Source: Paragordius varius (Eukaryota; Animalia; Nematomorpha). Taken from it: a DNA stretch of 64,000 nt. Below the pieces are notes generated by a model. It was given only the letters and a program-made list of their open reading frames with translations. It was not told the DNA's origin and did no database searches. Of this stretch, positions 18,780-63,882 are shown in pieces. The translations under genes were made by a program, and so were the position numbers. The stretch covers positions 3,720,001-3,784,000 of the forward strand of contig OZ176050.1 of NCBI GenBank assembly GCA_964247055.1, read 5' to 3'. Every line of letters begins with the position of its first letter. Position 1 is the first letter of the stretch.

Positions 18780-21350
18780 TTAAAATAAATGGTATATGGT
18801 ATACTTTTTCCATTTACTATGATCCAATTTGGCGAATCCCCCTTTCGATTGTATAGCAATGTGAGATAAATATTTACCCAACCAAAGCAAATCTTCATCC
18901 TTCGTTTCAACGTTATCATGAGTATTATGATAAGCGTATATCTAACATAAACAGTAAAATAGCATGTTCAGTTAAAATAATGCAAAATGATCTTATATGA
19001 TAAATACCAAATTAATATGATATTTCAATATGGCTCTACATAAAAACATAAAAAGTCTTAATGTGATCATTAGATAATGATGTCAAAATTTTTTGAAAAC
19101 ATAAAAAAAATAACTATAAAAGAAATTTATTATCGCCAAATTGCAATGTATAAGATTAAAATCAACCTTAATCCCATTGTTGGGGTTCATGAGGAAATTG
19201 TGTCGACAGTCATCTACAATCACAGTGTTATCTGCATTGTAGTATTCTGGAAATTTACCCCATATAACACCCAACGGTTTGACCTTTTTTACATAAAAAA
19301 TTGTCAGGATACGTCTCAAATGGTACTTTATTAAATAAAAGAGACCATTATATTAAAATAAATAGAATTATTTAAAACGTTGAAGATATGAAATGGTTAA
19401 AATTAAACCCAATATATTTGTCATTATAACATGAAAACCAATTTGCTTGATTAAATTAAAAATACAATTGCCTTTTTAATAATTCAGTATTTATGCCTTA
19501 TACATAGTTTGCAAAGTTAATAGAAAACTTAAATCAATCTAAACGTTAAGGCTTAATAATAATAATTTAAGTGTTAAACACTGGATAATCACTTAAAACC
19601 ATATAAAAACAATTAACACTATATTAAATTTAAATGTTTGTTAAGATCCCAAGAGTTAATCCTGGGTTTTAGCTGTAAATTTATTTTTGTGAAAAATGGC
19701 GATATATATTTATTGTTTAAATTTAAAACTCTATTTAAAACATTCTGTTGTTTTGTTAACCAGTTCAAATTTTTCCTGCAGCTTAGAGTGACGCGGTGAA
19801 ATAAAAAATGACGTAAACATAACATTCTTGACCATATTTTGCGTTTTTAATTTTGTAAGATATTTAGGAGCATTTATTTATTGGTTATAAAGTATTTATG
19901 TGTTACATATTGATTAAAACTATTCTGTATAAATGGATTATAAATTTTATCCTAATATAAAATTTTGAACCATAAATTTTAACATTTTCCAACTTCTGGT
20001 ACTTCCATATGCCTCACCTGAACCTTTTTATGTATTACCCTTTTAGTTGTACAATCATATACCTTCTCTCTGTAAATTAATGCTTATCAATTGTTCTTAA
20101 TAAAATTTGTAAAAAACCAAATATAAACGAAAATGGTGTCATGCACACAATTTATATATAATGATCGCGGAAAATAATTAGCTAAAATATCCGCAAAAAG
20201 GGTCAATAAAGCAATATCTTACATCTACTAAACCGCGGTCCTCAGTGTAAACGGAAATCATTGCAGCTCGATCAAGAAAAAAGCTAATTTTGTAATCAAA
20301 TCCGGTGCCAGATTCCTCCTGTAAAGCTTGTCCTAACTGACTTATTTTCGATTCAATGTATTTCATATTGGTAGCGGCTAAAATTAAAAAAATAAAATTG
20401 TTGTACGGTTGGCATATGTAAAAAAAATATTAGAAATAGTAGTTAGGAGTTAAAATAAATTTGTTTAATTTTGAGAAAAATGGCAATTTCCAATATTTAC
20501 CAAATTTAGTACTTATTACTTTAATATGAATAGAAACAAATTACTTTAATATCAATTAATAAATATTTTTACTTTACCTTAATCATTATTAAAAACCTAA
20601 AGTTATATATAAAAACATACTTAGTAACATAAATAGAGAAATTTGATTTAATTAATTTAATATTTTTCACTATTAAAAAAGGGGGATTTTGGATTATAAA
20701 AAAAGAAACATAAAAAAATTAAAATATTACACCAAATGCATATATCATAATATTCATATACGGTGTGCAAAAAATCATGGAGATATGGGCGCATTAATTC
20801 AGAACCCTTTTCGGCGTATGATTTATGATCTTAAAATAGATAAGTTTATAATAACCAAAAATAGTTCCATCTATGTCCAAAACAAGTAAATTTTTGCCAG
20901 GTCTAGGCTTTGTAAATACATTTATATCATAATTATCAATTCTTTGTTGAATCTTGTCCAAATATATCTGCCTTAAGGGTAATAATTATTTCAAAAACCT
21001 TAAATGAAGGGCTGTTTCTTCTTCAACACAAAAATCGTCTAAATCATTTTTTATTTCTTCTACTGGTTTATATTCATCAAGCTAGCGACTTAAAGGAAAA
21101 AAACTTGTTCGTTTGATCCAATAACCATAATCTTCATCCCATCTTTAATATTTGTTTTTTCCAACGAGTCATCATCATTCCCTGTATATATATATAATTA
21201 AAAAACACCTTTTATCCCAATTAATTTTTGACGATCTGGCAATACATTGGTTAAATCAAATATCTTCAATTTTAAATCTAACAATTTGGACTTTTCATTT
21301 AAATCCGCAATTTTAAAATTGTTTTTATTCCATTTTATGTGTATTAACAT
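18780..21350 (-). CDS. UBLCP1: Ubiquitin-like domain-containing CTD phosphatase 1
   Basis: 8 exons: 21350-21209, 21181-21105, 21081-20999, 20971-20856, 20829-20731, 20377-20223, 19283-19167, 18941-18780; all GT-AG and phase-compatible. [13 protein letters not shown]; HAD motif LLVLDIDGT; [33 protein letters not shown]. One missing T near 18835 in the last exon. Confidence 0.95.
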
Positions 21351-21367
21351 TTGATCATATGCCGACC

Positions 21368-21535
21368 ATGCCTCCGCCACCGTCAAACTTGAAACTTATT
21401 TTGAAAGATTTATACAAAGATCCGTTCAAATTTGCGCTTATTAAAAGTTGGGGAACATTTGCTTTCAGTGTTTGGTTTGTACGGCATGTATTAGAAAATC
21501 TGGATTTATTTGGGATCAATCCTCTGCCATTATAA
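21368..21535 (+). CDS. TOMM6: Mitochondrial import receptor subunit TOM6-like small membrane protein (55 aa)
   Basis: MPPPPSNLKLILKDLYKDPFKFALIKSWGTFAFSVWFVRHVLENLDLFGINPLPL*. The D..F..LI...G.FA..VW..R.L..LDL pattern matches TOM6 as I recall it. GC-enriched island, gccgaccATG context, AATAAA overlapping the stop. Below the 60-aa ORF cutoff. Confidence 0.7.
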   Translation: MPPPPSNLKLILKDLYKDPFKFALIKSWGTFAFSVWFVRHVLENLDLFGINPLPL

Positions 21536-22977
21536 ATAAATGTATATACTTCCATATATATATTGTTTTTAAATGTGATTATATTGAAACATATTAGGAA
21601 AATATTTATTTAGTCTTTATTCAATTATTAATGATTTTTTGTCTCGGTCATAATTCGTAAATATATTTAATTATAACTAGCAATTTATATTAAAAGTCTG
21701 ATAAATTTTTCAAACTCATACCCGTTTTTTTTATATTTCTTTTAATTTCTTTGAATATTTACCCTACAAATAAAATATGTCTCGCCAAAAATATGCTTTG
21801 GGCCCAATCAATTATTGTCATTTTTTGCATATTTGGTTAAGGAATTTTATTTATTAAATTATAAAAAATTATGCGCGTTGTTTTTAAAATATATGAAAAC
21901 AAAGCTTACAAAAATACCTATATTTTAAAGCTAGAAAATTTTTAATAAATTAAAATTGCCTAGAATATAATTATTTGTTTAGGGAGAGTGTATATGATTA
22001 AGAATATTTAATAAGGAAAATTTAAATTTTAAGGTATTTGGTTCTAATTTACGACATTTATATAACAATATTCAGTTAATAGATAAGGTTTGCTTCAGTC
22101 GTAGCCTTTGACAATTCTAGTTAAAGTTATATGGGTATATCAGTGAAAACAGTCAATATGGGGCGTGTATTAAAATTAACAGCTATATTAACTGCTAAAC
22201 TCCCTAAGCTAAGGGGCGTGTAATATCAAAACAACAAATTTTAAATAATTTTGAGATCATAAGGATTAGAAATAGATAATGCCGTCTATCAACGAATGTG
22301 AAGGTGATATTTTAACCGCATGACTGAACAATGGAAGCGGGCTAGATATAAGAAATTGACTTGAAAGAATGGCTAAAAATGTTTCCAATTCCTCATATAT
22401 ATTTTTACGTAACTTTAATTAATTATTTCAAATCAGCACCCATGACCATTTATTTCATAAACTCTTTTTATATATTTTTCCAATTTTAATTTTATGAGCA
22501 GAAGTTTAATATAATATCTAGGTTCATAAATACAAACCATTAAGCAAAAAACCATTTCTAAGGCCTCTTGTGAGTCAGTCTATTATTATAACTGTGATTC
22601 AACCCATATTTTGCTATAAAAATTTAAAGCCATATCAGCAAACAGAGGTAATCACCAAAAAAATATTTTTTTGTCAAAGGCCTTGTACTATATATTGATA
22701 TTCCAAATATCTCTAAATAAGTATATTAAAAAATTAAAATAAATATTCATGGCCATAAAAAGCACTTTTTGGCCACGGTATGAGTTATACCGCTTTACAT
22801 CATATCATATAGCATCAAAGCGAAAAAAATTATTTATTTAATTTTTCGATCGTTTACACATTTTGCAACAGGTGATATAACTTTTGTAATACAAGTTTCA
22901 TAAAATCTTAACAAAAAATTTAAAATATGTTCTGCATGGCAGCATTAAACTCATTAAAGTGATGGTTGCGTTGCTTT

Positions 22978-23916
22978 TTATCCATGATGTTTTCCATAAT
23001 TTCTTGAGCTATATCCTCCGTGGTGGTGATGTCCATAACCTCTATGAGATCTTCCATACGAGCCACCCTGATGTCTCTCATAGTTAGTCCCGTAGCTTGC
23101 GTGTCCGCCATATTGCCTACCATATGATGATCGTCTGCCATGTCCTTTCCAACTCCAGTCATTTAAGGTGCGTTTATATCTTTTGTTATAGGCACCACCA
23201 TGATGTCCCAAAGAGCGATATCCGCTATATCGATGATGATGACCCCCTGAAATAAATCAAACGTTTGAGAAAATACTAAGGATGGGAATAATTGATTGAT
23301 AAATGTATACTATTTTCGGTTTAAAATTTTTAAACCAATATAATTATCAAAGAGCAACACATTACTATGAATAGTAATAACTAAATGCGTAATTATTTAA
23401 TAAAAATTAAAAGAATGAACAATTTCACTTGAAATTAATTTTTATTAAATAAATACGGATGTCCTTTATATTTATCATATTCTTTTGCTTGTATTTAATG
23501 TAGTTTAATGAATAATTAGCTATATACCTCCCCGGTGACCATGACTTTGGCCATAATTGTATCCATAATTTCTTGTTTCATGATGATAACCATAATGTGA
23601 CCTGCCTCTGCCATAATTTAAATCTCGTTTGCTACGTGCTGAACTTAAAGGTAAAATATTTTGCGTCTCATCATCACCGACATCTTGTGCATCTATTGAT
23701 TCTCTGACGTACCTTTTTCCAGTTGAATCGTCTTCAAAATCATTTTCGAATGGGACAGATGGTACTAAATTATCATTTTCAATTTCTTTATTCGCTTGAA
23801 CGCTGACAAATATGAAGAGGCAAATGCTCTATATGACAATAAATAAAATATTTTAAATCCGTTATGACATTACCTTTTTAAGCAGTTTATACTTCAAAAT
23901 ATTGATATATATTCAT
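22978..23916 (-). CDS. Secreted prepro-peptide A, Gly/His/Tyr-rich (197 aa)
   Basis: Exons 23916-23893, 23828-23528, 23246-22978. Signal peptide ...SICLFIFVSVQA; acidic pro-region; RSKR|DLNYGRGRSHYGYHH...; second site RYKR|TLNDWSW...; ends KHHG*. Exon 1 is the least certain part. Confidence 0.8.
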
Positions 23917-25599
23917 TAATGTTGCGTTTTTTACCTTGAGCAATCTTCTTAATATATTTGGATTATGAAATATTGGTTGTATTATGTTTATTTGTGTTTT
24001 TTTTTTCAATTAATAATGATATTTGGATTTCCGAATATGTGGAAACTGTTTTTATTATCTAAAATACTTTAGTATTATATCATTTTGATGTATTAATTGA
24101 AAATGATAAAAAAATTATTTTTATGTTACTTTAACCTTTTTTTAAAACCAAAAAAGCGTTTTGGGATAATTCAGAACCTAAACCGCGGTTTCATAAAATA
24201 TAAGTTTAAAATTTATCTTTTTAATTTTATACGATGAAAATTAAATTTTTTTATATTTTTATTTTTTTCAGCCTTATGCCTCATCAATATTTATTAGTTA
24301 TAGTCATTTTGTAGAAATTAGGTTTGTAAATTCAAATAAGGAACCGAAATCAAAACCATTTTTTATACAAAAAACAACAGAACTAAAATTTTTGGAGCAG
24401 AACACAGTGAAATCGGAACCAATAACCGTTTTAATCCAAGAGCAAAAATGAAAAGTATATAAGGATAAACACATAAAAATTAAGTATAGTGTAATGTAAA
24501 TTACCAATAGAAGTATGAGTTGGGGTTTCATATCAAACGATACAAATGTATTAGATTTGATGAAAAAGTAGTGCTTGCTTAAAAAAACTTGCCTTTTTAT
24601 ACCTTTTTACCAGACACATCAATTGACCACCGTTTTGAAGGTTAACGTTATTGTCGCAATATTAATTGTGGTTTTTATCGTCGATGTAACTTAATTTTGT
24701 AAAATTTATGATAAATTATTATTTAACCTTATCACTTTTATTTAACCGAGGATAACATTTTGATACTATAATTATCAGTGATCTTTATAATTTTTTATGA
24801 ATAATTTATGTATAATGATATTTTTACATGGACAATTATTGTCAACTCTACGATTATGATTTAAAGAATATAAATAATTCAAGTCTACCATGTAATTTTT
24901 GCAATTAAAACCTTGATTTGTCAAAATTACCATTATTGTCATAAAATAATCGATTTATTATAAAATCATAGTTATCATTTGTGAATGATGAACGATTACT
25001 AAACTGTATATGGGTTTTATATGCTAATCTATTCGCTATCCTCTTAGGGGGCAGTCTAAGGATAAATATATATTTAAAAACATTATATGGGTCATAACTT
25101 TAAAGGGATAGAAAATACAAAAATGCTAAATTCAAAATAAACATTATATTTAAATAGATAACGACCTTTAAACCAGTCAACTTTAAATTAATTTTAAAAT
25201 TATTATTTTATATCTATGTTTTTGATTTAAAACCAAATCCTTTTTATCACTTCATTATTATCTTTTTAGGTAGTTTTTTACCCAGAGCGATTGTGAATTC
25301 CAATATTTTAAGACATATAGGACCAAATTTAAAATAAAGCAATCTATGGCAATTTAGGGGCGCAATATTAAAAAATTAAAAGTACTATTGTAAAAACACA
25401 TTCCCATACGTTTTGCCGCCATTTTTTTCCTGGATTTTTTAAGGATAGGCACTTATAATCTATGTTGCATAGAATTCTAGTTTATGCCCTTTAAATCTCT
25501 AAAGATACAGTCAAGAAGGCATTTAATTAAAAAAAATTGGGAGAAAGAAATCCTCAAAAATTAAATGATGAATTAACAGTTAATATTGCAATCATAGCT

Positions 25600-26510
25600 G
25601 TAAATTTTTATGAAATAATTTTAAGTTTTTAAATATTATAAAATAAAATATTTTAAAAATGTCGCTCTTGATAAATAAGTTTTGAGAAAATAAGCTGCTA
25701 ACATTTTCGGTAAGTTTTGGTTAAATTATAAAACTTATTTAATCAGTTAAATTATTTTTATTATAATATCTTGTTAAAGTTTTTTTTATTCACCAAGTTG
25801 GTGTAAAAAGCGGTATACATTCCAAGACCTTTTAATTGATTATTTTTTAAATACTAAAGACAACCAAATATTCGTAAAAATCCCAATACAAATATTATTT
25901 TGTCATTAAACAGACTTGTTACCTGGATTTGTAAGGATTGTTGGATGATATTCCACTACTTTAAAATCCTATTTTAAATAAATTATGTACTTAATAATTA
26001 TAACTCATGTAAGAATTCAAAATAAAACAGTATAAATTTTTTATACACTCATAAACCCGATGACAAAAAATGCAAAAATAAAATACAATATTTTTGGTTT
26101 TATTTTGATATATAAGTATTTTTTACTGAATAAAATATGAATGTTAAGATTTTATTAGTGAGTCTAGGTAGAAAATAATTAAAAAAAATATTTTAATATA
26201 GTTTCATTAAATTTTTTTGTCTTTTAAATTTGATAAACGAAAAACGCCATCTTTAAAGCTGAAATTTTATAGAAACCCTAACTATATTATTTTAAGCTAT
26301 TTATATATTGAAAATATCTTCTAAAATGATAATAAACCATAATTCAAATTTTATCATTATTTTTTAAATTATCCCTAACCTTAATTTTCACTTTTTGCCC
26401 GATTTCGATTTTCTATCAATATTTAAAAAATAGGTTGTCAAAATAAAAAATTTTGCGGCAAATGAATACGCTGGTCATAAGCTATTTCATGTAAAAAAAT
26501 TTTTTTACAG
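25600..26510. repeat. Degenerate copy of foldback family 2
   Basis: 26290-26500 aligns with 39900-40090 (gcggcaaatgaatacgctgg). 25860-25990 aligns with the centre of the 39-40 kb palindrome (ggattgttgg.tgatattcca). Confidence 0.55.
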
Positions 26511-26511
26511 A

Positions 26512-26514
<3 letters not shown>

Positions 26515-26542
<28 letters not shown>
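26515..26542. repeat. (TA)n microsatellite
   Basis: Pure TA run at the junction of two repeat families. Confidence 0.9.
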
Positions 26543-26545
<3 letters not shown>

Positions 26546-26549
26546 TGTT

Positions 26550-27100
26550 ATAACATCTCAACCGTTTATATCGTTTCCATCATGCTCAAAATAGTATGGC
26601 TTCAAAAAAATTAAATTTTTAGTATGCATTTTTTAAAAAATATATTTAGTTATCAAAATTTAGCATATATTTAAAATTATTGTACAATGTCGGAGTTTTG
26701 CGTTTATTTTAAGAGCACAGTCCATTTTGAAAGAGCTAAAAAATTTGGGACTTTCAGAGCCCACATCTAAAAATTTAAATTTTTTAAAAATATTGTGCTT
26801 TTTATATGTAGTTTATGTTATATTTTAGTAATATTTTTGAAATAAAGCATTTAGCATTCACCAAAAAATATATTTGAAAAAATTGCGCACCTTTTGCAAT
26901 TTTATGCGGAGCCCTCACAAAAGTGTAAATAACTTTGTTTGATAACTCGGAAAGGTTAAAACCAAAAGCACCATGATAATCCTAATATTTTTCTATCAGA
27001 ATATGTATATATTTCATTAGGATTTTTTTTGTGGAAATGTGTAATACACCACACCGATGGTGTAAAAATAGGTAAAGTATGTTTTGTTTTGAACTGCGGT
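26550..27100. repeat. Single arm of foldback family 1
   Basis: Begins cgtttccatcatgctcaaaatagtat and stays collinear with 12510-12930. Confidence 0.65.
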
Positions 27101-28024
27101 GAAAGAAAAACCATGTTGAAGAAAAGTTAAGTGATACAAAAAAATGTTTGGAGAATTAATATATTTTCAACATTTTTTATCCACAACTTATATTGCAGAA
27201 GATTCCTAAAGATCATAGCGAGGCATGAGAGGGCACTGCTAGATTATATGTTTAACGCAAAAATTTTATAGCCACATTTTGCTTAATATTTTTTCAACAT
27301 AATGAATGTATTTAGAGACTAATCCCGATGAATAGCTTAGAACGGGCTTAACTAAAATTGTGCAATTCATAAACGTGAAATTTATCCTTATTATTATAAT
27401 TACAAAATATTTTTAGCAATGATCGCTTTTTAGATATACTTTTTGTTAGGTCACAATAAGAAAATAAGACGCTATAGTCAAATAAAAATATGTAAGATTA
27501 GTAATAGCAATCCAGATAAGGTTCATTTGGTAAAACAGGAAAATATTATTACGATCGATTTATGCTGCCTGTTAATGACTCTTTAATGTACAAAAAACTG
27601 AGAGATCCTTATGAATATATTTTTATATAAATTAATTTAATGGCCACAAAATTACTCACGATCATATTCATTATTAAAGAATATTTTTTATTTTATGTAA
27701 ATTTTGAGAATAATAAATTTGTTTTCTGATTTATGCACTTTTGCTTTTTGATTTGAAAAAAATTAAATAAAAAACGTTTGAAATTAAAACATGCTTCGGA
27801 AAAAATGTTTTTAGTTTTTTTAAAATCTCTGGGGAAAATGTTTCGATTAAATTTGAAATATATATTCGCCTGTGGATATTTTTAACTGAGATAAACAATA
27901 AAAAACCATATTAGAATGCGACATATTTATTCAAATTATGATATGAAATGTGTGTATTTTACATAATAAATTTCTTTTGAATTTGGGAAGGCAGTTTTTT
28001 GGAACGTCTTTAGATAAACTGTAA

Positions 28025-28985
28025 TCAACCATGGCGTCTACCTCTTCCAGAATGTCCTTTTCTATGTCCACCAAAGTGACCGTTAGACCCTTGGTGACTA
28101 TTTCTTCCCGAACGGCCCTGGGAACGTTTTCCTCGGTTATGAGATCTTCCGATATTTTTTCCACCTCGCCGATTCCCTAAAAATAAATGATTGATTAAAG
28201 ATTTAGATCAGTGGTACTTAAACCGTGGTTCTATGAGAGCCTTATTATGGTTCTGAAATATGTTAGATGTAATAAAATAATAAAATATTTTTAAAAATCG
28301 GCAATTACAGTCTCTGTGACTAGTTTCAAATCCTAAAAAGGGGATTAATTTTCAAACTGATTATATGAGTGCGACATTGGATGCGTTAATATCGTTACAT
28401 AATATTTTATCTTATATTATTTAACGACTCTTACCATAAAATATAAAAAATGAGCCAGTATTTAAGCAAGAAAAAGGTCATTTTAATATTAAGCGCTCAC
28501 CACTAGAACGTGATCCTCTTCGGGAGCCTGCTCTACGTCCGCGCCCACCTCGACCCCCACTCTTGCGAAGACGTCGGAAAGAGTTTCCTCTCCGACTGTT
28601 TCGGGCACGACGGCCCCCTCTACCAACAGATCTGCCCCGGGCTCCATCTCTACCTCTATTGCGATTATTCAAATCTCGCTTGATTCGCGGTTCTGAAATG
28701 TTTTTGACTTGATCCTCATCAATGTTATCAATAGTATCGTCATCGCCATCAATATCAACATCCGCAGATCTCTTGACCAAAAAGGAATCATCTTCAAAGC
28801 CTTGTTCCAATCCTAAATCATCGTAATCAACTTCGAGATAATCGATTTCCAATTCGGCGCAGCTTACACACATGAAAAGGCACAACCCCTAGCGTATACC
28901 ATAATATCAGTTTTATAATTTACTTTTTTAAGTAAAAACAAAAAAATAAGAGTATTACCGCAATCAGAATGTAGCAAGATTTCAT
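28025..28985 (-). CDS. Secreted prepro-peptide B, Gly/Arg-rich (188 aa)
   Basis: Exons 28985-28959, 28888-28501, 28176-28025. Signal MKSCYILIAGLCLFMCVSCA; 60-aa pro-region with 22 D/E; RIKR|DLNNRNRGRDG...; 108-aa mature part with 32 Arg and 4 Lys; ends RRHG*. Confidence 0.85.
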
Positions 28986-29050
28986 GGCTTGTAGTTATGA
29001 TGAAAGATTGAATTAAAAAAAATAAGTGAATATTGGTAAAATTCACGGCC

Positions 29051-29058
29051 TTTTTATA
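29051..29058 (-). promoter_or_regulatory. Candidate TATA box of prepro-peptide B
   Basis: Minus strand ggTATAAAAAgg ~65 bp upstream of the ATG at 28985. AT-rich background lowers certainty. Confidence 0.45.
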
Positions 29059-29472
29059 CCTTTTTTGGTGACATTCTCGTTTTTTTTGAAGTTTAAAATA
29101 ATATCAAAACAAATTTTAAACACGGATCTTAATTATGCATCTCAATAATTAATTATCCTTGTTGTTACAATAGATATAATTATTTCCACACCTATCATAT
29201 AGCTTTTAAATTCATGACACGACCTTCTGGTCAATACATTTTTCATCTTCTTATTTGATAGTTCTTTTTTTATAATATTCATATAATTGATTTGTGTTCA
29301 TAATTATTTTAATTATATTATTTTTAATGTGTGTTTTGCATAAATTAACCAAACTGATCAACAACAAAATGACCATTTGAAAATATATTTATTATAAACA
29401 AGGTAAGGTCATACATACATACATCCATACATAAAACCAAAAATAATGATAAATCATCAATTATGTTGTCTT

Positions 29473-36500: not shown

Positions 36501-36638
36501 TACCCAAAAAATCGTTTTTAAGAATAAAACAGCCATAACATTATAATAAGATTTGTAATAAACTGATATATTATTTCATTATAAATTTAACATTTAAATT
36601 ATATTTTTTGAAGAAATTGATATATAAAATTGATATAG

Positions 36639-45297: not shown

Positions 45298-46961
45298 CTA
45301 TAAAAAGTATTGAAAAGCTTTTTGTTTGGGTATATCCCTGTCTTTGTCAGGTACTGCTTCAAATATAAGCGGAGTTTGACTCCCATCTTCGGCAAATTTT
45401 ATGACTGCGGCCTTATTACCACATCGATAACAATAATTTGGGGCTGACCAAATGGTTACAAGTGTATTATCAAATATATACTTGTATCCTGTATGTATAA
45501 AAATATTCGATAAATAAACTCTTCAAAAAGTTATTTTTTGAAATATGTTAACCAGGAAAAATTCAGTACTAAAAACTATTAAAGGTTTAAAATAAGGTGG
45601 AATCGTAATATGTGTTTTTAGTGTTTATTACCTTCATTAACCAATTGGTGAGCTCGGCAAATGAGTGAGAGGTTATTGGTTCGGACAAACTAAGTAAAAA
45701 AATCATTTCTTTAAAAAATAAAAACAATAAAATATAAATGTTGTATATGTATCCATATAATATATATAAAATATAAAAAAATATTATTTGTCTTTATATA
45801 TACATTTACGGATCCCTATCGACAATTATATATCATTTGTTTGGGCCAATCAAGCAACAAAAAAATGTTAAATTTAAAAATTAAATCTGTTTACCATATA
45901 CGCATACTAGTAGAGCAAATTTAAAAAAATGAGATGCCTTAAGATACGCGAAAAAGACAGAAAATGCAATATACTTCAAGCGTAACATTTTTTCCAAATA
46001 ACCAGCCAGCTCCTCGAGAACTTACAGCCCAATTTTGAGAATTAGCAGAAGAACTCATAAGCTTTCCCCCGAAATTGTTATCCTCAAGGAATGGAAGTTC
46101 ATTGTCATCATCGTCTGCCCCTTCCCCAAATCCACAAGGATCATTTGGATCCGACCAAACTAAATCACAGAAAGGACCTTTTTGAGGGATTTCTTGAACG
46201 CGTTTTATGGTCCGGATTTGATCAATAGTCGCTATGGATGGGGATAAACCACCATGAATGCATAATATACGATTGTCGATAACCTGTGGTGATGTATTAA
46301 TACATAAGAAAAATATTTTTTTACAATAACATACAAATTGATATAAAATGCACTGTAAAAATAAGACAAATATATAAATATAAAGACATAAATAATTTTT
46401 ATAATTATTTGTGTTTAAATAATCAAAAAATACAGCAGCAATCGGTAAGTAATCAAAGAGATTCGTGATAAACTTCCAAGCGTTACCATTCCCATACTTA
46501 GTTAAGCATTCATCTATAAGTGGCATAAAATTAAAAAAAACCATAAAAGCCATATATTCTAGTGGTTTGTCTACTTTCATGATTACCACGGAGTAAAACT
46601 ATTTTATTTGGCCATTTTGCTTTAAGGACTAAAAGTTTCGTAACTGTTTCTAAGCTGTAATAACCTCTATCAACAAAGTCACCCTAATAATATTGATAAG
46701 CGCTTACAAGAAAAATATATTTTTCATCGGGAATTTGTCCAGACTTTTTAAACAATTCTTCCAAGTCGTAATACTGACCATGAATATCACCACAAACGGT
46801 GACCGGTGTTTGAACATTTTGTACATTTGGTTCTTCTATCAAAATATCACATACTATTCTGCATAATTGCTTAAGATAATCATAATAATTACCCTTAAAT
46901 TATTTTCAGATAAATATTTGCACAATTTTGTTTCTTCAACAAAAAAATCCAAGTCAAACAT
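45298..46961 (-). CDS. PPP6C: Serine/threonine protein phosphatase 6 catalytic subunit (336 aa)
   Basis: Exons 46961-46893, 46869-46708, 46683-46542, 46513-46434, 46283-45975, 45689-45632, 45488-45298. GDIHG, GDFVDRG, RGNHE, HGG, RAHQ, SAPNYC, C-terminal YFL. PP6-type KYGNGNAW and GAGWLFG. Confidence 0.93.
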
Positions 46962-48140: not shown

Positions 48141-48339
48141 TATATAATTAACAAAAAATCGTTTATTTTTATGATTAGCTGGAAATATAAAACCCATATA
48201 TCACCGCAAACTTAAAAATACCTGGATTGCGCTATAAAAATTATATGCTATATTTTGACATTTATAAAAGTTTTTTTCAAAACATGGATATTTTGCTTAT
48301 AAATTTAATTAAGCAAAATTTTGGCGAAGCGAGTTTTAT

Positions 48340-49064: not shown

Positions 49065-49190
49065 TATCATTTTTGAGTCAAAAGCAACATTTTATTATCC
49101 AACGCAAATTTTTTCAAGTAAACGTAATTTTTGATCCAAACGCAAAACTTTGCGTTTGCTTAAATGTTGCTTTTGACTGAAAAATGGTAT
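49065..49190. repeat. Small inverted-repeat element (MITE-like)
   Basis: catttttgagtcaaaagcaacattt is inverted against aaatgttgcttttgactgaaaaatg. Confidence 0.65.
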
Positions 49191-50059: not shown

Positions 50060-50400
50060 AGGGCGATTTGAAATTTGAATATCTCAAAAAGTATTTAAGG
50101 TATTAGGTCGAATTTAAAAATATTTGATTTCTTTACGTTTAAAAGCACATGCTTCAAATTTTTTTTCGAAAATTAAACTTGAAAAATATCTTCATCTCAT
50201 TTTTCGCCGCCATCTTTTTCTTTATTTTTTTAATTCGCTAATAAAATAGGCAAATAAATGTATATTATGGTTAGAAAATGCAAATTAATAACTTTAGTAA
50301 GATTTTAAATTACATTTACCAGCAATTAAATAACTCTTTATTTCAATTGTGATTTAAAGCTGTCCCAATTTTTGACTCTAGAAGTTATAAAACTGCAAAA
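50060..50400 (+). repeat. Family C copy
   Basis: Reverse complement of 3420-3730. Confidence 0.6.
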
Positions 50401-51088
50401 ATGGAATTTATTTAACAGGAGAAAGATGTTAAATTTTTTAACTAAAAAGCTTTTAAAACAGTAGATTTACTAGATTGAGTTCTAAGATATATAATTACCC
50501 CAATATATAATCGCAGACAGAAAAGGTCATGGTTAAAAATGGAGGCTACTTACATGGCTTAAACACACTCCAATAAAATATGCATACTTATAATATAGAA
50601 TAAACCCGAAATCTTTGAAAATTTATTTGAATTTGTTTTACCGTAGAAAAATCTATTATCTAGAAGATATTATAAAATTTAAGAAAAAAATGTTACGTTA
50701 AAAAACTAACTCTTCATGTTGTTTTTTAGTTTTAAGTAAAATATGTATTACGCCATATAGCTTAGTGAGTAAAAATGACCTTAGGCCAAAAAATATTTTG
50801 ATAAAATATATTTTAAGCAAAAGCGACCATTCAAATGAATACTTTTGAAATTACATAGTAGTATAAATATTTTATCTTGTAATAAAATATAATGTTTACA
50901 AACAAAAGCAATGTGACTATTTATAATATAATTAAAACGATATTATTTTTAAAGTAAAATTTTATATCAAAGAAGAATTAATTTTTCATTTGCGAGTTTT
51001 TTGATAACTATATACAATTTTCTATTTTTTTTATTTCACACAATTTTTTAAACCGTCCATAATATCAAACATTTTTAAAGAAAACCCA

Positions 51089-53637: not shown

Positions 53638-54168
53638 TGTCAAACTTTATTCTTTACATTTATTTTTAACAACATATATATATAATGTACCACTCCAAAA
53701 ATCGCCAAGTATATGGCAAAAAGTATCATATTTTATATATAATTAATTTTTTATAAAGTATTCAAACATTTTATTACTCCTACATAAAAGTTTTTGTATA
53801 TATTTTTGCAAGTTATGCAATATTATTATATACATGTATTCAGCTAAACATACATTTATGATAATTTATTTGACATTTTGATATGCACCGGGTATACACT
53901 ATATACACTCTTGAAAAAATATTTATTTCAATAATTTTTTATATACTTTAACAAAAGTGATGAGCAATGGCCTCTGGTAATAGAGGTCAAATCTTTATAT
54001 ATTTCATTATAGCAGTTATACTGTTTACTATGCAATAAAAAGTTTGCCACTGTATACCATATTATATATATATATATATATATACATTAATTATTTTGTC
54101 ACATAATCTTCACATAATTAATAAATGTATCATGCATGTAAAGATTGCAATTTACACCAGAGAGTTTT

Positions 54169-57100
54169 TTAAACATTTTTCTTGAGTGTCCTTTGTTTTT
54201 CAGCCTTTTCCACCAATTTTTCAGCCAGTAGCAAGCCCTTGCGGACTCGTATTGCATTAAGATAAGTTTGAGCTCGATTACGTTTTTCCACATTTAAGGA
54301 ATCACCTTCGTCCATATCTTTGATTTCATCATTAAGCTCGGTTTCATTCGACTTGAAGTGTGTAGTAGTAGAATTATCCAGAAAACTTAATTCTTCCAAT
54401 TCGGCTTTACTTAATGGTTGTTCATCTAATATCTGGAATAAAAAGATAGTTAGTTGTGTTTGAAAACAAAGTGATGTTAGTGTATAAAATATAAGACCCT
54501 TTTATTTGGAATAAATTGGAAAAAAGATTTATCTACATTTGAAAAATAAAATATTAGTATATAAAAAAGAAATTGCGTTTTTGCCAAAAAACTTAATGTA
54601 AAAAATTTGAGTACGTTAAATTTAATAATATATGGAGTAAAAAGATATTCTTAGTAAATATACCTCCCATTTTGCAAATGATAGTTGAGGATTAGCTAGA
54701 CCGCTAGTTTTAGTCCTAAGTTCATGCGTGAATCCAAAACTCTCTACCATTGGAAGTAAGGATTTAACGCTAAATAATTGTGTGCCTTCAATCGATTCCT
54801 CCGATACAATCTTGCCATGACGCTTATGTAAGACACCATACATTTTACCTAAATGCAAAATTAAAGTAAAATTCGAAATTTTTGTGGGAATATCTAGATA
54901 TTTCAGGAAAGAATTAGCCGATTAAAAAAGTCTCGTTAATAGTTAGATAAAATCAATTTATACCTAAAACTTCAACATTGACTTGTACATCGCATGCATA
55001 CATTGCTAACATAAGGCGAAGTGATGATCGATATAACGTGTATTGCAAGCGATTTTTTATTTGAGACCCCACTGTGCCTGCTTGTAAAATTTGTTGACAA
55101 GATTCTTTTGAAAATATTTTCTCCATTCTTTTGTCATCCACAACTGACGGTTTTAGTGGAATAAAACCATTAATTAAAAGGGTTAAACACAATTTTAGCG
55201 AAAGTGTTTCGATAGAAGTGTTCATATTGGCATAAGATCCAGCAAATGCTTCCTCAAACTGTATCTGTCCATTGGCAAATGGTAATTTCTGGTTGGACAA
55301 ATAATTGGCTAAAGCATTCAGCGACACGTAGTAATAATAGTAATTGTTTAATGTACCCGGGCTCTCATCTTCATAATTGGATGATTCGCTTTTATCCTTT
55401 GATAAAGTGTTTTGTAAATATTTGTCACACTGTAAAAGTGATTGATAATTTAATCTTATATACATGTCATTGACGATAAATGATATATTTCGCATAGGTT
55501 CACCACACAGTGGGCCAGAAGCCACGATTTGATTAAATGCATTAATTATACTGCCATTCAATGTTGGTGACATAAAAAACTGCGACAAAATTGTAGAAAC
55601 TGGCATATCCAGTAAATCCACTTGCTTTATGCCGTCTATGGCTCCGGAAAAATCTGAGAGAAACGGAAAATTATAAATCAACAAATTTATGTTTGAGTTA
55701 TCGTATGCGGCAACGTAAGCACGTTCATGGGGTAAATATTTTGTGCGTAGATTATCTTGTGCATATAAAATGCCTAGTGTACACCAACAAAATGGTTTAA
55801 AACTAGGCGTAATAGCAGCATATTTGCCATGCGCTTTTATGTGACTTTTTGATTCAGATCCGGTTGTTTTTGTTTGGCAACCTTTTGTCCCAGGTTTGAT
55901 GATAGAGTCTGAACCACCAGTTTTGTAAGAATCAACAATGGAAACATTGTCGAGTTTGGTGGCACTTAAAGGAATAAAAGAGTCATGCGAAATAATTGAT
56001 GCTATTTCATCCCCATCATTCGAAGGTGTTTCTCCCATTTGTGTTACAATATGCGAGGTATTAAACTGTACTGATGTTGCTTTATTTCGATCTTCCAACT
56101 TAGCTAAACGTTTAATTCGTTTAACTCGGTCACATTTACAGTTTTCGTTGTTAGACGACAATGTTGTGGACAAGAGTTGGATTGCAGAATTAAAATTTTT
56201 CGTGTCGGATGAGAGTGCCAATGATGAATGCTCACCATTCAACAAATCAATGTACATAGGGCACAAACTTTTTGTTAAATTATGCGTTTTTTCAAACGTA
56301 TCAGATGTTTCATTTGCTATATAACGCGTTTCGACATTTAAATCCACCGTTTTATGCACAAGGGAGGGGAGAGCAGGAACCTGTAATATAACTCCCATAT
56401 TTCGAAGGATAGATATAAATTTTGGACTATCTGAATGTTTTGATTGCATCAAAACTGTATCATTTGATCCTAAACATTTTGTATTCTCTTGTAATTGTTG
56501 TTTAGAGTTTTCTGCATGCGTATTATACAAATTCGTTTGCTCATCGGTTGACGTTATAAAATCATACTGATAATTGGATATAATAGTTTCACGAAAGGGA
56601 ACTATTGGTTTAGAAACGCTAAAATGTGCGTGAAATTGTTCAACTAAATCACTGTCATTCATGGTATTTAATGCATTTATATGTGTGGTGGTATCATTGT
56701 TGCCTTCAGAGTAAGATAACTCATCCATAATGTGAGCCAATTCAAGGATGCAATGTTCCAAATGAACTTCCCCAATTATCTTAAGTATGAGTTGACCGTT
56801 ATTGTTGAGATAAAACTTGGAGGATGGGTCGGAAGCGCATAGCAATTTAAGGGCTAAACACAAGAGCAAAATGAACAATTTATCAATATTTGGAACAAAT
56901 TTATTTTAAATTTAATTCTTTAAAAATATGAATAATTATATTTAAACCACGAAAAAAAAATTTAACCTTGATGTAGCTTTTGATATAAACCAATTTTTTT
57001 GGGTTCAATGGCAACTTCCAGCAACGGTTGAGCGTAGTGATATAAATTTGACTAAAAAATAGACAAATATTTAATTAAAACAGTCAATTATAATTTAAAG

Positions 57101-60100
57101 ACAAGGAAAATTTAATTTAACAGAGTGTTAATAAAAATAGCATTATACCAAGCAAGGAGCATATTTATCACTGGATATGGTAAGTGTTTTAGGTAATTGA
57201 CGTAGTATATCGTAAGAAACACGTCTTTTATCATCGATATTTGCTAATTTATTTTCTTCATCAGAAGAATTACTATTGTGTGTAATAAATTCAATTTGGG
57301 CCACTACCACGTTTCCAGCTTTAATTGCGGGTAAAAAATCATGGTTCACATTTTTAGTTTCGACTAAATTATTTGTTTTGCAACAAAGTTGTGTGATATC
57401 AGTTAAATCCTCATTCCCACCTTGGCACATGAAAATGCGTTTAACATAAAGTTTATGTAAATGATTATCATTAGTATCATCTTGCGTATTAGTGGTTAAA
57501 TTGTTAACTCCTTGTTCAAACGACGTTCTTAAATTATCAGAATTTTCACTGTGACTAAACACGAAAGAAAATATCAATGTAAAAATATAATGGAATGCTA
57601 GAAATACAGCAATATAATTTGATAGATAAAAATAATCAACAATACAAATCATAAAAATTAGCCAATTTGATAAAAAACATTAACAATATATAAAATTGTA
57701 AGAATATTAGCAATAAGTACGTTTTAGATTGAAGAATGTAATAATTTTGATTTGGCTCAAGTTGACCGGAATATATTTTGCAAAGTGCTAGAAAAACGAA
57801 TTTGTGATCATCATTATTGCATTTGGAGTGCTCATCTGATGGAATTCCGTCCGTTTCAACAGGTTTATTCTCATCTTGACAAAATACTGGAACGTTTTCT
57901 ATTGTAAAATACATAAATAAACGAATGATAAAATAATTAAGTATCATTTAAGGACTATATACGTTAAAATAACGGTTGTGGCAAAAATGTTTAAACATTT
58001 TTATTAAATATAATATGTTTTTTGTTTTCCGAATTCGTGAATTAGAGAAAAGATTTAGCGAGTCATAATTATAAATTTACTAATGTATTATTTCATAGTA
58101 ATTAAAAATTTGCAATATCGAAACTCTACCGCTGGACATGATAATATTAAAAAAACGCCAAATCACATTAAAAAATACTCCTAATCCCCCTTAATTATTA
58201 TCACTAATTTTTGTAGATAACAAATCTACACACAATAGTTAATAAATTATTATTGTATTCATATTAAAATACCGTTCTTTTCAATATTTTCATTTTCATC
58301 TTTGATAGAATTTTGGTGATTTTCATTGTTTAAAATTGGATTTGTATCATTGAATCTAGCCTTGTATTGCTTTAATTTTTGCCTTCGATCTGCAAGTTTT
58401 TGCATAAATGTTGAATCAGTATTGGAAATATTATCCCTCTCAATATTATTCATGTGATGATAATGAGGAGAGTTTTTAAGGATTCCATTTATATTTCCAC
58501 CATTACAGATAATTTGATAATTAGTTTTTTTAGCAAAAACCGTCGATGTGAGTGCAGCAGAATCGCATTTAAATATTTTACATATAAATGCAATGGTTGG
58601 TACGCTACTTTGTTGCGTGTTGCAATCTTGAATAGTTGTGTCATTGCTTTCACAATTCAATATTGCTAAAAGTTGTTTATATATATACATAATTATTAAA
58701 GTTATAAAGATAAAACGTAAAAATAAAATGTTTTTTTCAATTTAATTAAAGTAGTCATTTTGGATTGCAAAATAAGGATGTGGGATGTAAATTGGTAACA
58801 TAAATTATATATTTCAAAATTGTAATGTAGTTAATGTAATATCGAAGTTTAAAAAGTATGAATGCGTGTATAAAAATGTTGTTTGTTGGTTCCTTTATAA
58901 TTTTTACTAAAATACATTTTAGACAAAAAATATTTAATTATACCTTTGAGGTACTTAGTATTGTATTCTTCTCCATTAACAATATCTTGATCGTGGATCA
59001 AAACTTTTAATCGATTCTCAGTCATCTCCAATGGGCTTGGTAATTTTTCACATATGGAAGCTTTCATAAATATTTGAAAATATGTTTCAAAAATTGCTAA
59101 ATTACATATTTAAGCCAAGTATAGCCTTAAAAATTAAAAATTGATACGAAGTAATATTAAAGTGTTTTTAGAAAATATTTGATATTTTAAGGGTTTAAAT
59201 AAAAGGATACATTAGGCAATTATATGAAATTACGAATTTCAAAAAAATTATACCATAAAAATTAGTTGCTAATGGTAACCATTGTTGCATTATTAAGCAA
59301 GTTAACAGATATTTTGATTCGTAGAAATCCAGTTCTTTTGGCGGAAGAGTTAAACCAAGCCCCTTAAACACTTTTACAAGTGCTACATTATCCCTATTAA
59401 TAAATATAAATAAATGGTTATATAAAAAATAGTAAAATAATTTTAATATACCATTTACAAATATTCACCTTTAAATTCAAATTCACCCTATAAATAAATT
59501 ATGTGTTTTCGGGCAAATATAACTCATCATTAATGTATAATATATTCTTATGGCATAGTTAATTATTCTTTCAGTTTTTAATTAATTTTAAACGAAATTC
59601 AATTTTTTAAACTTATCAAAAAATATTAGTAATTTTTAATATTAAAAAACACACAATTTATTTTAGGCTGAATTTAAATTGCTAGGGTGTATTTTGTTCA
59701 AAGGTAAATTTGAACTGTAAACGGTATATATAAAAACTAAAATCTATTATTGGTTGTTGGAATTTTCTAAAAATATACCTATTAATCAAAACTTTATCGT
59801 ACACATTCCAAACAGGATCCAATATAAAGGATACAAAGAGCGGTTTCTTCTGCTTAATCTATGAATGCAATTTTTTGATAAATTTTGTTAATTATTTAAA
59901 TAAAGAGTAAAATACTATAAAAAATTACAGTTAGATTAATTAATGATTATCACGAAAAAACAAATGAATATCCAAAAGAAAAAATGATTAACACATGGTT
60001 GAAAAAATATGTTAAAATACAGCAGAAAGGAATTATCAAGGATCGTATATGGTGTATTTATTACATATTTTTTAACCATGTGCTAATCATTTATTATAAT

Positions 60101-61917
60101 AAATAATAAAACCTTAGCTCCCTTTCTAATCATTTTTTCTTTGGTATGGAAATAGTAATCACCCCACAAAGTTTTGTTCAAAACGTTTCGACTAAATCCG
60201 AGTTTTTTAGCATATAATTCTGAAAATGTGGCAATACTATATATCAAAATATAATTTATTATCACACATAAATTATTAAAAATGAATAAAAGATTTTGAG
60301 TTTTAAATTTTCATAAATAAACATTTGGTTTAAAGGTAAAAAGTACGTAAAATTGTTAAAATACGACAACTAAAAAAATAGTCCACAAATACTAATCGAA
60401 ATTATTTCTACAAGGATGATTATTAACATGATTGAGTAAGTTAAAATTAATCACTTCATGTATTGTTAAAATAAAATAATTATCAAAAATATTAATAATT
60501 TATTTCATACACAACATATAAACCTAAAAAGCCATCCATCTAAAGCACTAGCAAACAAAACGTTTCCTTTCGTTGGACAGAAATAAAGACTTTCATCCGA
60601 GGGTGCATTAAATTCCATATCGTTTTCTAAAAGTGTTAGATCTTCCTTTTTGTTCTAAAATATTGAAAAATAATTAATTTTAATTACATAGACCCATATC
60701 AAAATATCAAAACTCATATATTTAACAAAATAAATAAACATTTATCAATGAAAATATGATATTTTATGTATAAATTCACTATATACTAAGGGATTTAATT
60801 TATAAACAGTTACAAATAATTTCGAAAAATCTATTTAAAATAATAAAAAAATTTTATAGAAAAACCTTTTACCTCGTTTCGATCTTGCATCGTAAAATGA
60901 GCTGATGCAATAAGTTCACTGAAAAAAGAGTTTACCTGTAAGAAAATAAAAAGTTTAAATTTTATTATATTAATAAAAAAAGAAAAAAATAACTAAAAAT
61001 GTTTACTTCACCCAAAATCTTTTCAATGTGTGTATAAGCTTCCATGGGCGTTAATTTCGTTTCCATAATTAAACGATCTATTTTGTTTAGGACTAATATG
61101 ATGGGGAGACCTTCATTCCATGTTTGCCGAATAACGGTTTGAGTCTATATTTTATTTTTCATATTAATCATTAAAATTATAATATTTGGACATAAAATTA
61201 AAAATATATGTCGCATTATTTAATTAAATAACTTATTATTTTAGATTTATTAAAGGAGAGAATTTAAATTGAGGTTAGTACTTAAATAGGTGATACAGTC
61301 GACAGCTAAGGCTATTAGGGTTTTAAACATACCCGACCCTATACAAACACACACTATGAAACATAAAATCCATAATATAAAATGTTTATTGTAATTAAAA
61401 ATCTACAATCAAAAATATAATTTCCATAAAAATGGTCCTTCAATATTTAATTTTAACTGTATATTAAATTAAAATAATAAAATGTAAAAATTAGCATTTA
61501 AAAACACTTTTTTACTTGCGGACAAAGTCCTTCAACAACATCGATTAAAACGACAGCGCCGTCAGACAATCTGACTGCAATAGAAACTTCATTGCTAAAA
61601 TCGATATGTCCAGGTGAATCTATCAGGTTTATCAAAAATTTATCGTGTTGATTCGCCGCTTCATAAAGTAGGGAAATACAACTAGATTTTATAGTTATCC
61701 CCCTGTCTTGTTCCTCTTTCTTGTTATCCATATACCGTAACTTTCCAGCCGTTCTTTTGGCAATGAGTCCGTTCGAAGATATAAGATGGTCGGCAAAAGT
61801 TGTTTTTCCATGATCAACATGTGCTAACAGACAAATATTTCGTATGCACGATGGATTTTGCGAAACTTCAAAAATTAAATTTGATCGAGTGAGATGGCTA
61901 TTCAAAGAAGAGTGCAT
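54169..61917 (-). CDS. EFL1: Elongation factor-like GTPase 1 (60S maturation), expanded to ~1,530 aa
   Basis: 15 exons: 61917-61516, 61144-61007, 60935-60873, 60655-60524, 60236-60113, 59858-59779, 59393-59254, 59060-58944, 58665-58273, 57898-57721, 57554-57149, 57051-56967, 56853-54964, 54848-54664, 54432-54169. [37 protein letters not shown]; EFL1-specific C-terminus [18 protein letters not shown]. One-base phase mismatch at the exon 3/4 junction. Confidence 0.95.
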
Positions 61918-61961
61918 AAAATGATTTAAAACTCATTTTTTTTACATTCATCGACAAAATC

Positions 61962-63882
61962 ATGCTTGTAAAACATTATAAGGATTTGACCAATTTGGCC
62001 AAACTTATTGATGGTAATTTGATATCAAAGTAAATAATTTTATATATTTTAGACAACTAAAAGAGAAATTAAAGTTAGATGTCGCAAAATTTAAAAATTC
62101 TTATGGATTTGCACCTGGACTAGCTATCGTTCAGGTATTAAAGTTATCAAAATTCATATAGGTAGGAGATCGGACTGATTCCAATGTGTACATAAAAATG
62201 AAATTAAAGTCAGCCGAAGAAATTGGCATGACGGCCAATTTAATTAAAATAGCCAAAAGTTCATCTCAAAAAGAGGTTTTTAAAATTTATATATCAATAT
62301 GATTAGATACTATCCATAGTTAAACAATTAAATTCAGATCAATTAGTACATGGAATTATTATACAATTACCATTAGACACGGATGAAAAAATAGATTCCA
62401 ATTTTCTTTTATCCCACATATCGATTCACAAGGATGTTGACGGCCTCCATCCCTATAATAGTGGTCAACTTTCCCATGGTGATTTATCCAACACATTTAT
62501 ACCATGTACTCCGAACGGATGCCTTCATTTAATAAAATCTACAGGTTTTTTCTACGGTTAACAAAATTAATCTATATTATTTTTTTGATATAATTAATAT
62601 ACATTATGAATTTTAATATTCAAACAATTGGAATAAATAGTTTGTTCATCTAAAAATAGTATTATAGTGCAGAGGTGTCCACAAACGGCTTCGCGGGCCG
62701 CATCGATGGTAACAAATGCACATCAATAATTATTATTATATATGAATCATGAGATTGTAAAAAAATGCGACAACTATGCTACTTTTTAATTTGATTTTTG
62801 TTTGTTCGTTGGAAAAATTTAAAGTTTATTCAGATTTGACTACATTTTTAAAATTTCAAAAGTTAAATTTTAGTAAAATAGTTTGAATTACGTTTTCTTC
62901 TATAATTTTAAACTGATAATGTCTACTTCAAAATTTATTAAATATGAATAATTATAAGCATGATGATTACCATCTCTGGTGTTAATAAACATAATATTTT
63001 AATTTTGAATAAATTAAATAATATTTTAACACTTAATTACCTCACCTTTTTATCCGCGATAACATATTGGAATTTATATCCCAAAACTCAATCTTGTAAT
63101 AAACCACTGTTTAAATAAACAGCTGATTTTAAAATAAGTATCAGTTTTTGCTAAAATGTAATCTGAAAAAGTTAATAATTTACATTATCCAACCATATTT
63201 TTTTAAGAAATATGACGCCTTCTTAGCTAAAGAAAGCATATTTTCTATATAATGAGATTTGTATTAAACAAAAAAGTTATTACCATAACTATGTTTAATA
63301 TTATGTTTTATTGCTGATTGATAAGATTAAAATTCCTTATAAATTAATTTATTTATAATTTTAACATGAATTATTTGTAGGTTGTTCGATTGAAGGTAAA
63401 CGTGCGGTTGTCGTAGGCCGGAGTCGTATTGTTGGAAGTCCCATGGCTCAATTACTTATATGGAACAATGCTACTGTCACAGTTTGTCATTCTAAAACTC
63501 AAAATTTGTCCAACATAGTATGGTTTATTACACATTTTTATTGCCAACTAACTTATAGTCTCTCTTATATTTATTATACTTACCTTGTAATAAGCTCTTT
63601 CTATTACACTGCTTTACTAATGTCTTGATTAATGTAAATGCAGAACACAACATATATTTTAGCTTTTCTTCTCATTTTCATAAAATTTTGACCGTCATTT
63701 TAAATGGTTTAATATTTGGCCTCACGATATGATAAAAACTAAGTTTCACAATTTTTGCATTGTTTTTTAGACAAAAGAAGCTGACATATTGGTAGCAGCG
63801 ATTGGGAAGGCGCATTTCATAAAAGGTGATTGGATTAAACCTGGTGCAATTGTCATTGATTGTGGAATCAATAGTATTCCAG
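61962..63882 (+). CDS. MTHFD1: Methylenetetrahydrofolate dehydrogenase/cyclohydrolase, N-terminal part (C1-THF synthase type); runs off the window
   Basis: Exons 61962-62029, 62053-62134, 62162-62275, 62307-62544, 63381-63517, 63771-63882. [63 protein letters not shown]. Confidence 0.92.
62670..62706 (+). mobile_element. Possible hAT-Charlie-type terminal remnant in an intron
   Basis: cagaggtgtccacaaacggcttcgcgggccgcat resembles CAGGGGTGTC...GCGGGCCGCAT hAT ends. The other end was not found. Confidence 0.35.

Follow-up and report, generated by a model that had tools for sequence, protein, structure and literature searches.

Results

Micro-introns in three conserved genes

We analysed a 64,000-nucleotide (nt) stretch of the genome of the hairworm Paragordius varius (Nematomorpha; contig OZ176050.1, positions 3,720,001 to 3,784,000), hereafter the window. 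It corresponds to G000:C1:3720001-3784000 within a 110.6-megabase (Mb), 44-contig assembly. Three conserved genes in the window, UBLCP1, PPP6C and an MTHFD1-type dehydrogenase/cyclohydrolase gene (MTHFD), are interrupted by segments of 23 to 31 nt that we call micro-introns. An original prediction, made from the letters of the window, had listed ten of them as spliceosomal introns, and reading the sequence bears out the list in full: all ten start with GT and end with AG at exactly the predicted coordinates, with lengths of 27, 23, 27 and 26 nt in UBLCP1, 23, 24 and 28 nt in PPP6C, and 23, 27 and 31 nt in MTHFD. The three genes are laid out as follows, in window coordinates.

UBLCP1
21209-21350, minus strand: exon 1, with the ATG at 21350; N-terminal part of the ubiquitin-like (UBL) domain, matching positions 1-42 of the Pfam ubiquitin profile and the UBL domain of human and fly UBLCP1
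21182-21208, minus strand: micro-intron 1, 27 nt, phase 1, GT-AG; in-frame stop if retained; exon 2 has no match of its own
21082-21104, minus strand: micro-intron 2, 23 nt, phase 0, GT-AG; frameshift and stop if retained
20972-20998, minus strand: micro-intron 3, 27 nt, phase 2, GT-AG; in-frame stop if retained
20830-20855, minus strand: micro-intron 4, 26 nt, phase 1; exons 4 and 5 correspond to residues 116-152 and 154-185 of structure 3SHQ, and the split codon to residue 153
18783-20829, minus strand: remainder of the gene, with a NIF domain match; conserved peptides located and GT/AG boundaries read
20731-20829, 20223-20377 and 19167-19283, minus strand: exons 5, 6 and 7, followed by the last exon
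20378-20730 (353 nt), 19284-20222 (939 nt) and about 225 nt (3' end not fixed), minus strand: introns 5, 6 and 7

PPP6C
45301-46961, minus strand: whole gene, mapped by tblastn and a junction finder with full-length PP6C of the mite Oppia nitens (P0087); best named matches are PP6 catalytic subunits
46893-46961, 46708-46869, 46542-46683, 46434-46513, 45975-46283, 45632-45689 and 45301-45488, minus strand: exons
46870-46892, minus strand: micro-intron 1, 23 nt, phase 0, placed by the junction finder after residue 24 of the mite orthologue; Oppia nitens has a 52-nt intron at the same position and phase
46684-46707, minus strand: micro-intron 2, 24 nt, phase 0, after residue 78; Pfam positions abut; 48-nt Oppia intron there
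46514-46541, minus strand: micro-intron 3, 28 nt, phase 1, after residue 125; 51-nt Oppia intron at the same position and phase
46284-46433 (150 nt), 45690-45974 (285 nt) and 45489-45631 (143 nt), minus strand: later introns

MTHFD
61962-64000 and beyond, plus strand: MTHFD1-type gene encoding the dehydrogenase/cyclohydrolase (DC) domain only; exons 61962-62029, 62053-62134, 62162-62275, 62307-62545, 63381-63517 and 63771-63882
62030-62052, plus strand: micro-intron 1, 23 nt, phase 2, GT-AG; stop if retained; the flanking 22- and 27-residue exons have no match alone
62135-62161, plus strand: micro-intron 2, 27 nt, phase 0, GT-AG; in-frame stop if retained; exon 3 starts exactly at human MTHFD1 residue 43
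62276-62306, plus strand: micro-intron 3, 31 nt, phase 0; the Pfam and PDB matches of exons 3 and 4 adjoin
62546-63380 (835 nt), 63518-63770 (253 nt) and 63883 to past the window end (674 nt), plus strand: long introns; the last exon lies in L028:557-813

Read unspliced from its ATG, each gene meets stop codons in or just past every segment. When the segments are excised, the exon frames of all three genes remain open from the ATG onward. Homology searches were made exon by exon, and split codons were evaluated singly. For PPP6C every exon was matched individually: exons 2 and 3 cover positions 2-35 and 38-71 of the Pfam Metallophos profile, exon 4 corresponds to PP2A residues 132-157, and micro-intron 2, if read through, would add an eight-codon insert with a stop that is not seen in homologues. 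MTHFD exons 3 and 4 cover positions 35-72 and 74-115 of the Pfam profile THF_DHG_CYH, and residues 43-79 and 83-159 of the human MTHFD1 DC domain in PDB. Fly UBLCP1 (3SHQ) served as the reference for UBLCP1 exons 4 and 5. Removal of the segments thus restores conserved proteins, as had been proposed, with stop-free frames and gapless exon matches to UBLCP1, PP6C and an MTHFD1-type dehydrogenase/cyclohydrolase.

The comparison with Oppia PP6C is our strongest single result. The mite protein aligns contiguously across all three PPP6C segments, with no residues gained or lost (tblastn). A junction finder given only alignment anchors, frame arithmetic and GT/AG independently returned PPP6C intron coordinates identical to those first predicted. 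Introns interrupt Oppia PP6C after residues 24, 78, 125, 152 and 222, in phases 0, 0, 1, 0 and 0, and the hairworm introns occupy the same five residues and phases, at lengths of 23, 24, 28, 150 and 285 nt versus 52, 48, 51, 49 and 60 nt in the mite. Together, these comparisons support the view that the ten segments behave as genuine, very short GT-AG introns.

Some further features of PPP6C were recorded. Within exon 5, we do not accept a 99-nt GT...AG candidate (46062-46160, minus strand) as an intron: it keeps the frame, contains no stop, is 44-46% GC (guanine plus cytosine) and has no Oppia counterpart, and its excision would delete conserved residues. The segment looks coding, as a 33-residue GC-rich, acidic and glycine-rich in-frame insertion in a loop past the conserved WSDP motif, and it occurs in none of the homologues seen. 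Intron 4 (46284-46433, minus strand) is exactly 150 nt long and in frame without a stop. Exons 4 and 5 therefore lie within one 193-codon open frame, and retention would add 50 residues without truncation.

Micro-introns elsewhere in the genome

We searched the genome with mite PP6C, mapping each paralogue, and added the BiP and CCT genes. This gave 13 further micro-introns of 21-31 nt outside the window, in PP1, PP2A, PP4, calcineurin-like, BiP and CCT genes:

PP4-like gene: introns of 31, then 696 and 632 nt
PP1 gene, first of three: introns of 21, 21 and 22, then 1,483 nt
PP1 gene, second: introns of 24, then 79, 1,908 and 371 nt
PP1 gene, third: introns of 23, then 114, 2,140 and 410 nt
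PP2A-like gene: introns of 23 and 26, then 59, 475 and 202 nt
Calcineurin-like gene: introns of 24 and 24 nt
BiP gene: micro-introns of 23 and 28 nt
One CCT gene: a micro-intron of 26 nt

Taking the window and the other loci together, all 23 micro-introns read GT...AG. The same pattern recurs in at least 12 unrelated conserved genes. Exons are open and 60-74% identical to orthologues. Within this homology-guided sample, EFL1 (the neighbour of MTHFD), most CCT genes and two HSP70 genes have no micro-introns. The three PP1 paralogues are especially informative. At one common position they carry 21, 24 and 23 nt between conserved flanks, and because these lengths differ by non-multiples of three, the segments cannot be coding. 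At another common position the same genes hold 21, 79 and 114 nt. Thus, the size class of an intron is not tied to its position.

A 5'-proximal size class

Micro-introns come first. The intron order is 27, 23, 27, 26, 353, 939 and about 225 nt in UBLCP1, 23, 24, 28, 150, 285 and 143 nt in PPP6C, and 23, 27, 31, 835, 253 and 674 nt in MTHFD. Nine genes have both size classes, and in each of them the longer introns begin only downstream of the last micro-intron. Multiplied together, the exact order probabilities give 1 × 10−8, or 2 × 10−7 when only one PP1 gene is counted, and position correlates with log length in the pooled introns (Spearman rho 0.70, p = 6 × 10−8). This confirms the predicted clustering at the 5' ends of genes. 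The accompanying suggestion, that housekeeping genes have such introns and secreted-protein genes do not, is not supported: EFL1 is a housekeeping gene without a micro-intron, and a single secreted-peptide gene was modelled, with a first intron of 70 nt. In this gene, the second prepropeptide gene of the window, the 70-nt phase-0 intron is at 28889-28958 (minus strand), within the signal peptide and nine codons past the ATG at 28985.

Intron anatomy was compared between 20 mapped micro-introns and 21 long introns of the same genes. Micro-introns range from 21 to 31 nt with a mode of 23-24 nt, and the next shortest sampled intron is 59 nt. The length distribution is therefore bimodal, with nothing between 31 and 59 nt, and micro-introns are adjacent to one another. 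They make up a size class of their own, found only in the 5' part of genes, where adjacent micro-introns separated by short exons form a block that gives way to AT-rich ordinary introns of tens to thousands of bases. The longer introns span 59-2,512 nt, and at 20 micro-introns against 21 of these, a median below 30 nt was not found, these being counts from a sample and not a genome-wide histogram.

Composition and splice signals also set the class apart. GC content is 18% in micro-introns versus 32% in the adjoining 24 exonic nt (p = 3 × 10−4). The 5' site of micro-introns is GTW (position +3 is A or T in 9 introns each and G in the other 2; n = 20), and GTA is found in 9 of the 20 versus 18 of the 21 long introns (Fisher test, p = 0.009). 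In both size classes position +6 is T and position +5 is not G. Micro-introns end in a T-rich TTWAG, without a long polypyrimidine tract.

The original prediction further held that short introns are decoupled from genome compaction, and this stands in part. Micro-introns occur alongside transposons and introns of 59-2,140 nt or more, so uniform compaction does not explain them as a by-product. On the other side, the assembly is 110.6 Mb versus 288 Mb in Gordionus, the nearest relative (published nematomorph genomes are 200-300 Mb), and the EFL1 introns shared by the two worms are mostly far shorter here, as in one that measures 71 nt versus 8,343 nt in Gordionus.

Splicing machinery and the nature of the segments

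It is highly probable, judging from these patterns, that the segments are genuine U2-type GT-AG introns that have shrunk to 21-31 nt at ancestral positions and are removed by the ordinary major spliceosome via intron definition. Intron definition is a plausible mode of recognition. Removal from RNA in vivo would involve recognition across the intron despite a weak 5' splice site (GTW, T at +6), and would use a 3' end that is short and T-rich (TTWAG). If the branch adenosine lies about 8 nt before the AG, the stretch from the 5' splice site to the branch point would measure about 13-15 nt, and a minimum span between these two would impose a physical length floor of about 21 nt. Proximity to the cap may aid recognition of the weak 5' sites.

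Several observations weigh against this reading. The case is built from genomic sequence, from which we infer removal from RNA in vivo. Half of the window introns (five of ten) adjoin exons too short for any match alone: UBLCP1 introns 1-3 and MTHFD introns 1-2 border exons of 22-27 residues, for which searches of Pfam and PDB with each exon as a lone query returned nothing meaningful. These five have weaker support, which comes from the GT-AG ends, frame logic, the start of MTHFD exon 3 precisely at human residue 43, and a fitting residue number between anchored exons. A de novo scan of the window for GT...AG segments joining coding-like open frames recovered 2-5 of the 10 known introns, with decoy dinucleotide pairs equal in count. 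Such a scan cannot separate real micro-introns from decoys, so their abundance is gauged from about 12 genes sampled by homology. The branch point is only weakly assigned, with A at -8 in 12 of 20 micro-introns versus 7 of 21 long introns (p = 0.12). Finally, lengths that are a multiple of three are not depleted (9 of 20, two of those nine without an in-frame stop). In Paramecium, stop-free introns of such lengths are depleted. Hence, no Paramecium-like signature of translational surveillance is seen here.

The spliceosomal RNAs look ordinary. U1, U2, U4, U5 and U6 all gave full-length matches well above Rfam gathering scores, and the recognition motifs are intact: the U1 5' end (ACUUACCUG), the U2 branch-site box GUAGUA, and ACAGAGA and AGC in U6. 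U6atac is present. U12 was not found among the 42 of about 10,000 first-look candidates that were scored, which does not show its absence. With these small nuclear RNAs (snRNAs) present and the U1, U2 and U6 motifs unchanged, a rebuilt spliceosome is not supported, and the modified spliceosome first proposed finds no backing at the RNA level. The snRNA genes lie in large clusters with many decayed copies (G000:C3:257000-528000 and G000:C6:565000-633000). At least 46 U2 matches occur, mostly on C3, and 17 U1 matches, nearly all on C6.

Change at the protein level is the alternative that survives best, although we consider it rather doubtful. The segments would then be spliced by a partly specialised route, either through U2AF-independent 3' recognition, like the SPF45-dependent splicing of human short introns, or after loss or change of SF1 or U2AF65. 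The footprint sizes of the U1 small nuclear ribonucleoprotein and of SF1/U2AF are established, and from them an intron of 21-24 nt seems too short to hold both together. The rarity of GTA in micro-introns and the missing long polypyrimidine tract point the same way. Against such a route stand the unchanged recognition motifs of the snRNAs and the example of myxozoans, which have introns of 22-27 nt and retain canonical U2, U2AF1 and U2AF2 (PMC13644364). It would be a possible refinement under which a modified spliceosome would prove right at the protein level.

Splicing at more distant sites, with the short exons skipped or forming part of larger introns, is very unlikely. The unmatched UBLCP1 exons 2-3 and MTHFD exons 1-2 would allow it, but without them UBLCP1 would lose the C-terminal half of its UBL domain, or MTHFD the conserved N-terminus of its DC domain. 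In addition, MTHFD exon 3 begins exactly at a human residue (43), the UBLCP1 residue count between anchored exons fits (about 54 here versus about 62 in fly), and each PPP6C exon is matched on its own.

That the segments are never removed, the genes being pseudogenes or the segments assembly or indel errors, is more improbable still. The segments are known here from genomic DNA alone, which leaves room for this explanation. It is at odds with the GT-AG ends of all 23, with the ancestral positions and phases seen in PPP6C against Oppia, and with the recurrence of the pattern in a dozen or more unrelated genes whose exons are open and conserved. Nor would random errors produce AT-rich stretches of 21-31 nt with splice dinucleotides at both ends. 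Least credible of all is excision from DNA (programmed elimination like that of ciliate internal eliminated sequences) or from RNA by a non-spliceosomal nuclease (as IRE1 cuts XBP1): the sizes overlap, the XBP1 intron being 23-26 nt and short Paramecium eliminated sequences falling in a similar range, but the boundaries are GT...AG rather than TA...TA, other animals have spliceosomal introns at these positions, and the same positions carry ordinary introns of 79-114 nt in paralogues.

Neighbouring genes and genome context

The MTHFD gene ends about 800 bases past the window and encodes about 330 residues, the DC domain without a formyl-tetrahydrofolate synthetase domain. Its sequence scores 79 bits to human MTHFD1 versus 37 bits to MTHFD2. 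The name MTHFD1 given to it earlier needs correction in that the DC domain alone is encoded. Next to it lies EFL1:

54217-61917, minus strand: EFL1 gene, with a GTP_EFTU match; mapped by the junction finder with Gordionus EFL1 (P0271)

The start codons of EFL1 and MTHFD stand head to head, with 44 nt between the ATGs (61917-61962). We looked for MTHFD next to Gordionus EFL1 and found none, and synteny there is not conserved. The first EFL1 introns measure 371, 71, 227 and 287 nt, with no micro-introns, and intron positions and phases are common to Gordionus. One EFL1 exon of 650 codons (54956-56905, minus strand) is very divergent, insertion-rich and of low complexity; it gave no Pfam match and no word-search match, and its flanks align to Gordionus EFL1.

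The best match of EFL1 exon 1 among 1.8 billion representatives was to the nematomorph Gordionus sp. m RMFG-2023 (71% identity), with others at 67% or below. An intronless PP1-like paralogue with a serine-rich N-terminal extension (G000:C2:8877340-8878431) is 84% identical to a Gordionus protein over 98% coverage, with others at 72% or below. It is intronless there too, and is probably an old retrogene predating the split of the two worms. Gordionus is thus the clear best match for two other genes tested, though its PP6C is not among the best matches to PP6C here and may be missing or mis-modelled in the annotation. GC content is about 27% in both genomes.

The mitochondrial contig (G000:C44:5980-10320) holds zero-loop hairpins, perfect or nearly so, whose arms measure 131 and 97 nt, a type described for hairworm mitochondrial DNA (PMC10380579). 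A tandem array of palindromic units of about 72 nt lies upstream of COX1, which has six TGA codons. A degraded COX1 fragment with several stops sits in the nuclear genome at G000:C1:10612280-10612597.

Discussion

Among 51 animal genomes surveyed in a 2026 study, introns below 30 nt turned up only in myxobolid myxozoans and Dicyema; splice signals there were reduced, weak A residues preceded the AG, U2 was canonical, and the authors predicted that more lineages would be found (PMC13644364). In flatworms, a class of microintrons defined as below 75 nt, with a mode of about 37 nt and a second peak at 90 nt, is clustered at the 5' ends of genes beside kilobase introns; the authors proposed intron definition as an explanation and cautioned that annotation with default settings overlooks such introns (PMC6530080). 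These published analogues are spliced by canonical machinery (PMC13644364, PMC6530080). The Gordionus genome paper makes no mention of introns, and we found no literature linking hairworms and intron length.

The flatworms (Opisthorchis felineus, Clonorchis, Schistosoma, Echinococcus and Macrostomum; PMC6530080) resemble our hairworm in layout. They too have a short class beside kilobase introns, mutually adjacent and 5'-biased; they are mostly parasitic worms, their short class is missed by the default minimum intron lengths of annotation software, and the genomes reported are large and repeat-rich. They belong to a different phylum, and their mode is about 33-37 nt rather than 23-24 nt (range 21-31). 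Their microintron splice sites are nearer consensus (PMC6530080), whereas the 5' site here is weaker, GTW versus GTA. Length and signals bring our introns closer to those of Myxobolidae (Henneguya, Thelohanellus and Myxobolus) and Dicyema japonicum, parasitic animals with medians of 22-27 nt, a GTa 5' signal, a weak A before the AG that probably serves as branch site, and canonical U2 (PMC13644364). There, however, the short class is the bulk of introns in compact genomes. Here it makes up about half of a small sample and is strictly 5'-proximal, beside introns of more than 2 kilobases.

Ciliates likewise remove GT-AG introns of about 20-30 nt with a conventional spliceosome (Paramecium about 25 nt, Stentor 15-16 nt; cited in PMC13644364), but they are unicellular, nearly all of their introns are tiny, and the 9 of 20 multiples of three found here speak of no depletion. 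The nematodes, as ecdysozoan relatives, share a T-rich 3' end abutting the AG and no clear branch-site consensus. The intron mode of C. elegans is about 47 nt, so that its short introns are about twice as long, and we know of no strict 5' polarity of short introns in nematodes.

A flatworm-like layout joined to a dicyemid- and myxobolid-like length in a third phylum makes these introns a variant of an already described kind. Tentatively, we suggest that nematomorphs may independently have acquired a zone, strictly cap-proximal, where introns as short as about 21 nt, the floor, are excised by an ordinary animal spliceosome; this would be convergent on flatworm microintrons, with introns a third shorter.

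If the reading of these segments as spliceosomal micro-introns is true, Nematomorpha would be the third animal phylum with introns below the supposed 30-nt minimum. Because tiny and kilobase introns occur in the same gene, unlike in dicyemids and myxobolids, genome-wide compaction alone cannot explain extreme shortening. The strict 5'-to-3' order of the size classes, as in flatworms, offers a testable case for cap-proximal introns being recognised differently (by intron definition) from distal ones. Furthermore, such introns would defeat default gene prediction and completeness scoring, and claims of gene loss in Nematomorpha would need to be re-checked with micro-intron-aware annotation.

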